Assembly: GCA_020891255.1 (NCBI GenBank) | Contig: BQFW01000015.1 | Coordinates: 1,612,001-1,676,000, forward strand | Direction: 5' to 3' | From: Entomortierella parvispora E1425 | Lineage: Eukaryota; Fungi; Mortierellomycota | Length of the DNA stretch: 64,000 nucleotides | Notes under the pieces: generated by a model | Databases searched by the model: none | Told to the model about the DNA's origin: nothing | The model's input: the letters and a program-made list of their open reading frames with translations, nothing else | Program-made: the position numbers and the translations under genes | Shown: positions 463 through 1,234 of the stretch, one piece after another | Layout: the number at the start of each line of letters is the position of its first letter | Position numbering within the stretch: position 1 is the stretch's first letter

Positions 463-1234
463 ATGTCCGATATTCAGAACCTCCAGTCTTACGGTAAGAA
501 CACCCGACACTGACCTGCCGCAACTTCACGGATGATTCCAACGGGCAACCGATGAGGGCGATTACCCTCACGGATCTAGATCAGTGTGCTCATCAGATGA
601 TCCTCTTTCTTTGATCTATAGATCCCTTTGCCGACATCGGTGATGCCGGCAACACTGGCGATCAGCAGAGCTATATCCGTACGTGTTTCCTCCCTGACTG
701 GCTGTCAAACTCATCAACGTCCTCCCCTCCATACAAACACACAACCCTTCCCCATCCACAGGGGTCAAAAGTGATGATAACTTTTTTATAACCGTAGCGG
801 GGCTTTGACAAACCGTTTTGGTTTGTTTCCTGTTCTGTCGGTAGTATATTTTATATACGCCATTGTCATAGTTACACTGATTTATTTTGTTGACCCCTCC
901 CCTCCCCTTCCCCCCTTTCACCTATCGTGTCCATTGTATGCCAGCTGATCCCACTGACTAACACTGTGTGTTTTAATGTCAAACAGATATCCGTATCCAG
1001 CAGCGTAACGGACGCAAGACCTTGACCACCATCCAAGGATTGCCTGCCACCTTTGACCAGAAGCGCATGCTCAAGATCTTCAAGAAGGATTTCGCTTGTA
1101 ACGGTACTTTGGTCGAGGACGAGGAGTTGGGATCTGTCATTCAGTTGCAGGGTGATCAGCGTACCAAGGTCTTGACCCTCTTGACCACCGAGGGTGGCAT
1201 TGACAAGAAGCAGATCAAGCTCCACGGATTCTAA
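463..1234 (+). CDS. SUI1: Translation initiation factor eIF1 (3 exons: 463-493, 622-678, 987-1234)
   Basis: Spliced product [15 protein letters not shown]...[20 protein letters not shown]...KKDFACNGT...VIQLQGDQR...IKLHGF; canonical GT-AG introns. Confidence 0.98.
761..897 (+). ncRNA. SNORD46: Intronic box C/D snoRNA, U46/SNORD46 (yeast snR63) type, in eIF1 intron 2
   Basis: Box C GTGATGA 771-777, box D CTGA 877-880, terminal stem GGGGTCAA (761-768)/TTGACCCC (890-897). The D-guide GTCATAGTTAC (865-875) is complementary to the LSU rRNA helix-69 sequence GUAACUAUGAC; the D+5 rule points at the second A (yeast Am2256 equivalent). Confidence 0.88.

Follow-up and report, generated by a model that had tools for sequence, protein, structure and literature searches.

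The question raised by this locus is whether intron 2 of a very compact eIF1 (SUI1) gene of the fungus Entomortierella parvispora encodes an snR63/U46-type box C/D snoRNA, which rRNA nucleotide such an RNA would modify, and whether its location within eIF1 has a meaning of its own. The window referred to in the text is the whole stretch of DNA analysed, 64,000 nucleotides of contig BQFW01000015.1, with positions counted from its first letter. The host gene comprises three exons, which together encode 111 residues:

463-493, plus strand: eIF1/SUI1 exon 1, with the ATG at 463, corresponding to residues 1-10 of Mortierellaceae eIF1
494-621, plus strand: eIF1 intron 1, GT..AG
622-678, plus strand: eIF1 exon 2, a 19-residue peptide, placed by spliced metatranscriptome contigs
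679-986, plus strand: eIF1 intron 2, the snoRNA host, 308 nt, with GT at 679 and AG at 986
987-1234, plus strand: eIF1 exon 3, with the stop codon TAA at 1232-1234, placed by its translation and Pfam SUI1

The identity of the host as eIF1, proposed in a first-pass annotation of the window, is borne out by exon 3, on which the searches were run: it gave a Pfam SUI1 match of 2e-23 and found Mortierellaceae eIF1 proteins as its best protein matches, with 86-96% identity. The junction between exons 1 and 2 is present in one metatranscriptome contig. Positions 678 and 987 are joined directly in contigs of two soil metatranscriptomes, originating from close relatives, which establishes intron 2 as a real intron that is spliced out. 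Its likely branch site is the motif TGACTAAC at 955-962.

Within intron 2, the following elements of a box C/D snoRNA were located:

761-768, plus strand: 5' strand of the outer stem, GGGGTCAA, forming 8 bp with 889-896, as read from the sequence
771-777, plus strand: C box GUGAUGA (DNA GTGATGA), with little or no variation in 17 of 18 homologues
865-875, plus strand: antisense guide GUCAUAGUUAC (DNA GTCATAGTTAC), 11 nt, invariant across intact homologues
876, plus strand: spacer base A between guide and D box
877-880, plus strand: D box CUGA (DNA CTGA), conserved in homologues
889-896, plus strand: 3' strand of the outer stem, TTGACCCC, read likewise and pairing with 761-768

The C box, D box, 8-bp stem and 11-nt guide that had been annotated in the 308-nt intron were thus all found in their proposed places. 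Their arrangement is that of the box C/D class: a C box of the form RUGAUGA lies near the 5' end and a D box CUGA near the 3' end, the terminal pairing (AAA/UUU and the 8-bp stem) unites the two boxes, and an antisense element of at least 10 nt ends one base upstream of the D box, with its fifth base opposite the methylation site. The AAA at 768-770 can pair with the UUU at 881-883, between the outer stem and the boxes. The fold of 755-903, closed by the outer stem, has a free energy of -41.5 kcal/mol and a z-score of -3.25, and an outer stem as stable as the observed one occurred in none of 500 shuffles of the downstream flank. Even the nearest relative, the metagenomic locus L029, does not share the 8-bp stem; terminal pairing in relatives consists of short A/U or other stems, and the common part is a short A/U stem beside the boxes.

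The guide points to helix 69 of LSU rRNA. Its perfect complement, GUAACUAUGAC, is present in the genome's own LSU rDNA, where the helix 69 sequence GGGAGTAACTATGACTCTCTTAAGGTAGCC was found at four places, all four rDNA matches containing the target. Counting upstream from the D box, the fifth base is T872, and it stands opposite the second A of the loop sequence GUAAC in helix 69, so that the match to the genome's own rDNA upholds the earlier claim of complementarity to helix 69, with the D+5 base opposite the equivalent of yeast Am2256. In yeast, Am2256 of the helix 69 loop is guided by snR63, and pseudouridines 2258 and 2260 match E. coli 1915 and 1917 (PMC2794176); it is the numbering from these two pseudouridines that identifies the target A as A2256. 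The D-box guide therefore selects the same A of the helix 69 loop (A2256 in yeast, A3739 in human) as the snR63/SNORD46 group. In Dictyostelium, the methylation has been mapped as Am2522, assigned to the guide CD4, and equated with that of yeast snR63 and with Am3739 of human U46 (PMC8817022). Boxes, guide and target site thus agree with the proposed snR63/U46 type.

Rfam, searched at gathering scores over the whole window, gave zero matches, and no family passed the gathering threshold for the snR63/SNORD46 group (clan CL00061). When a permissive Rfam search was run on 650-1000, the best full-length match was DdR4, with 24.8 bits and an E-value of 0.13 against a gathering score of 70, and SNORD46 obtained 15.6 bits against a gathering score of 40, in an alignment confined to model positions 81-98. 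The elements of relatives gave weak full-length matches to snR63 (16-17 bits, against a gathering score of 50) and also weakly matched snoR442, whose consensus has the same guide. The covariance-model check foreseen in the first-pass annotation had, accordingly, a divided outcome: no family rose above threshold, but the sub-threshold matches are to families for the same site. Because distant lineages share only the boxes and the guide, the element is filed as a functional orthologue by its target, and not as an Rfam hit.

To follow the element through related fungi, their eIF1 loci were obtained by exact protein look-up. The state of the snoRNA in eIF1 intron 2 was as follows:

Linnemannia hyalina (L010, L011): present
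Mortierella polycephala, two assemblies (L012, L013): present
Mortierella polycephala, second paralogue (L019): present
Actinomortierella ambigua (L014): present
Lunasporangiospora selenospora (L015): present
Calcarisporiella thermophila (L020): present
Entomortierella chlamydospora (L009): degenerate copy

The snoRNA was absent from the eIF1 loci of Basidiobolus meristosporus (L021), Batrachochytrium dendrobatidis (L022) and Pleurotus pulmonarius (L023), and from those of Gigaspora rosea (L034) and Gigaspora margarita (L035), although in the latter two an intron at this position persists. Furthermore, metagenome contigs were scanned with a pattern consisting of the C box, a gap, and the guide plus D box, which gave ten loci. 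Two of them, L029 and L031, are Mortierellaceae eIF1 genes with the snoRNA. In another two, L027:528-666 and L032:1420-1552 (minus strand), the host is a divergent eIF1 gene, and the snoRNA again occupies this intron position, just ahead of the exon encoding RxQQRNGRK. The eIF1 of L027 and L032 has only 60-70% identity to any fungal eIF1 retrieved; L032 has 29% G+C and an additional intron at the same place as in Gigaspora. The same guide and a GUUUU hairpin were also found in L028:9911-10040 (minus strand) and L033:464-593, there in an intron just upstream of an exon of Fcf2 (Pfam Fcf2 about 1e-39), which is involved in pre-rRNA processing. Four of the ten loci have no assigned host, L025 and L030 being the same sequence. 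Five named Mortierellaceae species, Calcarisporiella and four metagenome contigs thus share the placement in this intron. In a pairwise comparison of eight intact Mortierellaceae copies, mean identity was 0.82 from the C box to the D box, 0.36 in the 80 nt upstream and 0.39 in the 80 nt downstream. The comparison of SUI1 intron 2 that had been suggested at the outset therefore speaks for the snoRNA, as intact relatives keep the boxes and the guide within a core that is conserved far beyond its flanks.

The sequence between the boxes is structured as well, with the following parts:

792-841, plus strand: internal structured domain, defined by covariation in ten Mortierellaceae copies (alignment A2)
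792-794 with 839-841, plus strand: helix 1
795-796 versus 834-838, plus strand: asymmetric loop, UA opposite UCUGU
797-801 with 829-833, plus strand: helix 2
807-814 with 820-827, plus strand: helix 3
815-819, plus strand: five-base apical loop GUUUU
844-858, plus strand: second small hairpin, 844-849 with 853-858, two pairs of which show compensatory change

In the ten copies of alignment A2, 97.7% of the cells pair in the chosen register, and changes on both sides affect 10 pairs, compared with 3.2+-1.3 in shuffles, none of 500 reaching the observed number. Slid partners gave 0-2 both-side-changed pairs, and the register preferred by RNAalifold for helix 2 was slightly worse than the chosen one. 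All 18 homologues of alignment A1, among them the Calcarisporiella copy and those with an Fcf2 host, have a C-GUUUU-G loop that caps a covarying stem. The asymmetric loop is laid out like a kink-turn, with a three-base bulge followed by G opposite A; its UCUGU strand reads UCUGA in three relatives and CCUAU in E. chlamydospora. The motifs CCGUA and CUGWCGG (UGUCGG in the window) may represent a degenerate D'/C' pair. A second guide upstream of a D' box was rejected: after the C box only UAACUU is kept, followed by variable sequence, and ahead of the C'-like motif stands a covarying stem. A pairing of the C box with the guide, returned by RNAalifold, was likewise set aside, all its columns being invariant and the pairing being in conflict with the C/D kink-turn.

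It has been described that human U46 belongs to the snoRNAs with conserved extra rRNA pairing, and that such pairing can be provided by the loop capping a stem located between D' and C' (van Nues et al. 2011, PMC3116282). For the GUUUU loop, the candidate partners are AAACGG, five bases before the target (-11 to -6), and, further up, ACCAAG..GCGG (-25 to -13). The best rRNA site for such duplexes varies between homologues, and the real loops scored better than shuffled ones in no more than about 50-95% of trials.

A combination of boxes and complementarity could also come together in an intron by accident, since chance alone would supply 0.43 occurrences of an 11-mer, one mismatch allowed, in each 64-kb window. 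The guide followed by the D box occurs once in the 38.9-Mb genome. Four one-mismatch matches to the guide plus D box lie elsewhere (on C2, C6, C8 and C9), and the reversed pattern also matches twice; the one-mismatch matches were taken as chance, the one on C8 (L007) having no upstream C box and none of them being matched by the covariance model. This model (R1), built from the ten Mortierellaceae copies, found one place only in the genome, the window copy, with 153.6 bits. Against an accidental origin of the window element stand its presence in the same intron in at least six named species, the covarying helices, and the guide and D box identical to those of SNORD46. The probability that remains for it is vanishingly small, and the comparative data effectively rule it out.

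The history of the host gene bears on the state of the element. About 210 kb before the window, the contig carries a second eIF1 gene (C15:1401432-1401680, minus strand; L016). Its exon 3 protein is 95% identical, its intron 2 is about 337 nt long and G+C-rich, and no trace of the snoRNA was found in that intron. The window copy adjoins a gene with CSTF2-type domains, according to relatives' records, and so do L010, L014 and L019. The 5' end of this neighbour occupies positions 1-240 of the window on the minus strand, the same gene lying upstream of eIF1 in these three loci, and the records of L010 and L019 give it RRM_1, CSTF2_hinge and CSTF_C domains. In one assembly of M. polycephala, the snoRNA is intact in both paralogues (L013:468-612 and L019:1848-1984), and the duplication of the host therefore carried the snoRNA along. 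In E. chlamydospora (L009:1799-1937), the C box has become GTGATAA, the guide holds a T-to-C change (GCCATAGTTAC, GCCATAG) and the C'-like motif is altered, yet the decay of the snoRNA has spared both its internal helices and the host gene. Such a distribution fits a duplication of host and snoRNA, followed by the loss of one redundant snoRNA copy.

A clearly decaying copy in a relative, together with Rfam scores below threshold and a degenerate C' motif, could suggest that the window element is itself a non-functional relic, the site being served by another guide or by an enzyme. However, its two boxes (C and D) and its guide have canonical sequences that do not vary among intact homologues, and its core is far better conserved than the surrounding intron. 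A relic is further disfavoured because this is the sole copy in the genome, without which a deeply conserved methylation would have no guide; we consider such a state highly improbable. It is, on the other hand, very probable from sequence and comparative data that positions 761-896 represent an intron-borne box C/D snoRNA, orthologous to snR63, U46/SNORD46, CD33 and CD4/DdR4, and it can be predicted with high confidence that this snoRNA is a functional guide for methylation of the A2256-equivalent.

Parts of the stretch were found in contigs of three soil or peat metatranscriptomes, which as contigs cannot show RNA ends. RNA over the snoRNA body is represented by only one low-depth metatranscriptome contig, 197 nt long, derived from a relative and covering 789-883, and it could originate from pre-mRNA or from DNA carry-over. 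According to the proposed mechanism, the snoRNA would be transcribed within the eIF1 pre-mRNA, the splicing of intron 2 being seen in relatives' RNA. Snu13, Nop58, Nop56 and fibrillarin would assemble on the C/D kink-turn, and exonucleases would shorten the spliced-out intron until a mature RNA remained, roughly 115-120 nt long and spanning about 766-885. The guide would then pair with the helix 69 loop and fibrillarin would 2'-O-methylate the second A of GUAAC, the A2256-equivalent, this position being predicted by the box D+5 rule. Such an RNA would have no second guide between its boxes, where the chain would fold into a conserved domain of stem-loops that contains a degenerate C'/D'-like kink.

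Intronic snoRNAs are generally hosted in highly expressed translation genes. As this is the usual arrangement, hosting by eIF1 is not evidence of a link to start-codon fidelity, and the host probably just supplies strong, growth-linked transcription. The first-pass annotation had held that this lineage moved the snoRNA into eIF1. This is contradicted by its presence in the same intron of Calcarisporiella thermophila and of two divergent metagenomic eIF1 genes, a shared placement that makes eIF1 hosting older than the Mortierellaceae. The coupling of a start-codon fidelity factor to helix 69 modification, also put forward there, does not hold either, considering the second paralogue devoid of the snoRNA, the decaying copy in a relative and the Fcf2 hosts elsewhere.

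A genuine snoRNA could in addition act in cis, its assembly in intron 2 tuning the splicing or the output of eIF1. The association with the same intron persists in the Mortierellaceae, in Calcarisporiella and in two divergent metagenomic lineages, and about 65-80 nt separate the snoRNA from the likely branch site downstream of it, a distance at which snoRNP assembly and splicing interact in vertebrates. However, the 337-nt intron 2 of the genome's second eIF1 paralogue does without the snoRNA, as do the eIF1 genes of Gigaspora, Basidiobolus, Batrachochytrium and Pleurotus; in E. chlamydospora the snoRNA decays while its host gene is intact, and in other fungi the host is Fcf2. A cis role is accordingly unlikely, and a methylation guide that eIF1 simply hosts remains the preferred reading. 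More tentatively, and as a possibility that we would not put at even chances, the pairing of the snoRNA with eIF1 intron 2 may be ancient, predating the split between Mortierellaceae, Calcarisporiella and at least two further lineages, and later lost or moved elsewhere, while the C-GUUUU-G hairpin on its kink-turn-like C'/D' may be an accessory element that docks pre-rRNA just upstream of helix 69 or binds a protein.

The snoRNA belongs to a familiar class, as an unremarkable member, and had not been listed for these fungi before. Searches of the literature turned up neither a snoRNA catalogue for Mortierellomycota nor a survey of Mortierella, and the main text of the fungal snoRNAome paper names neither the snoRNA family nor the genus. 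An annotation gap is thus filled, concerning a gene missed by Rfam thresholds, and methylation of the helix 69 loop, conserved from Amoebozoa to humans, is predicted also in these fungi. The locus further offers an example of how snoRNA hosting evolves, in which an old pairing of snoRNA and intron is followed by duplication of the host and the loss or decay of one copy. The findings give no support for regulation that specifically connects eIF1 with helix 69.

Among known systems, CD33 of Neurospora crassa is likewise an intronic box C/D snoRNA, 102 nt long, with a 13-bp D-box guide for 26S Am2218, and it is listed as a homologue of snR63 and U46, its host gene being unnamed in the main text (PMC2780460). 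Dictyostelium CD4 (PMC8817022) would, from the shared guide, correspond to DdR4, a name absent from that paper. DdR4 (RF01572) has in common with the window element GUGAUGAUAAC after the 5' end, as well as the guide and D box, whereas its internal region is unrelated and its consensus is without the GUUUU hairpin. Yeast snR63 is independently transcribed. Like the window element, it is a D-box guide for Am2256 in the helix 69 loop (PMC2794176). Its Rfam model (RF01259) has 255 positions, whereas the window element is about 115-120 nt long and intronic. Human U46 is hosted by RPS8, unlike the window element with its eIF1 host. Human U46/SNORD46 (RF00218, clan CL00061) is also intronic and targets 28S Am3739, which is equated with yeast Am2256 (PMC8817022). 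The greater part of U46 is unaligned to the window RNA, which is longer and has a structured internal domain. On the other hand, the common end with human U46, put forward in the first-pass annotation, proved accurate, as the 18 nt UUGUCAUAGUUACACUGA ending in the D box are identical to positions 81-98 of the SNORD46 consensus.
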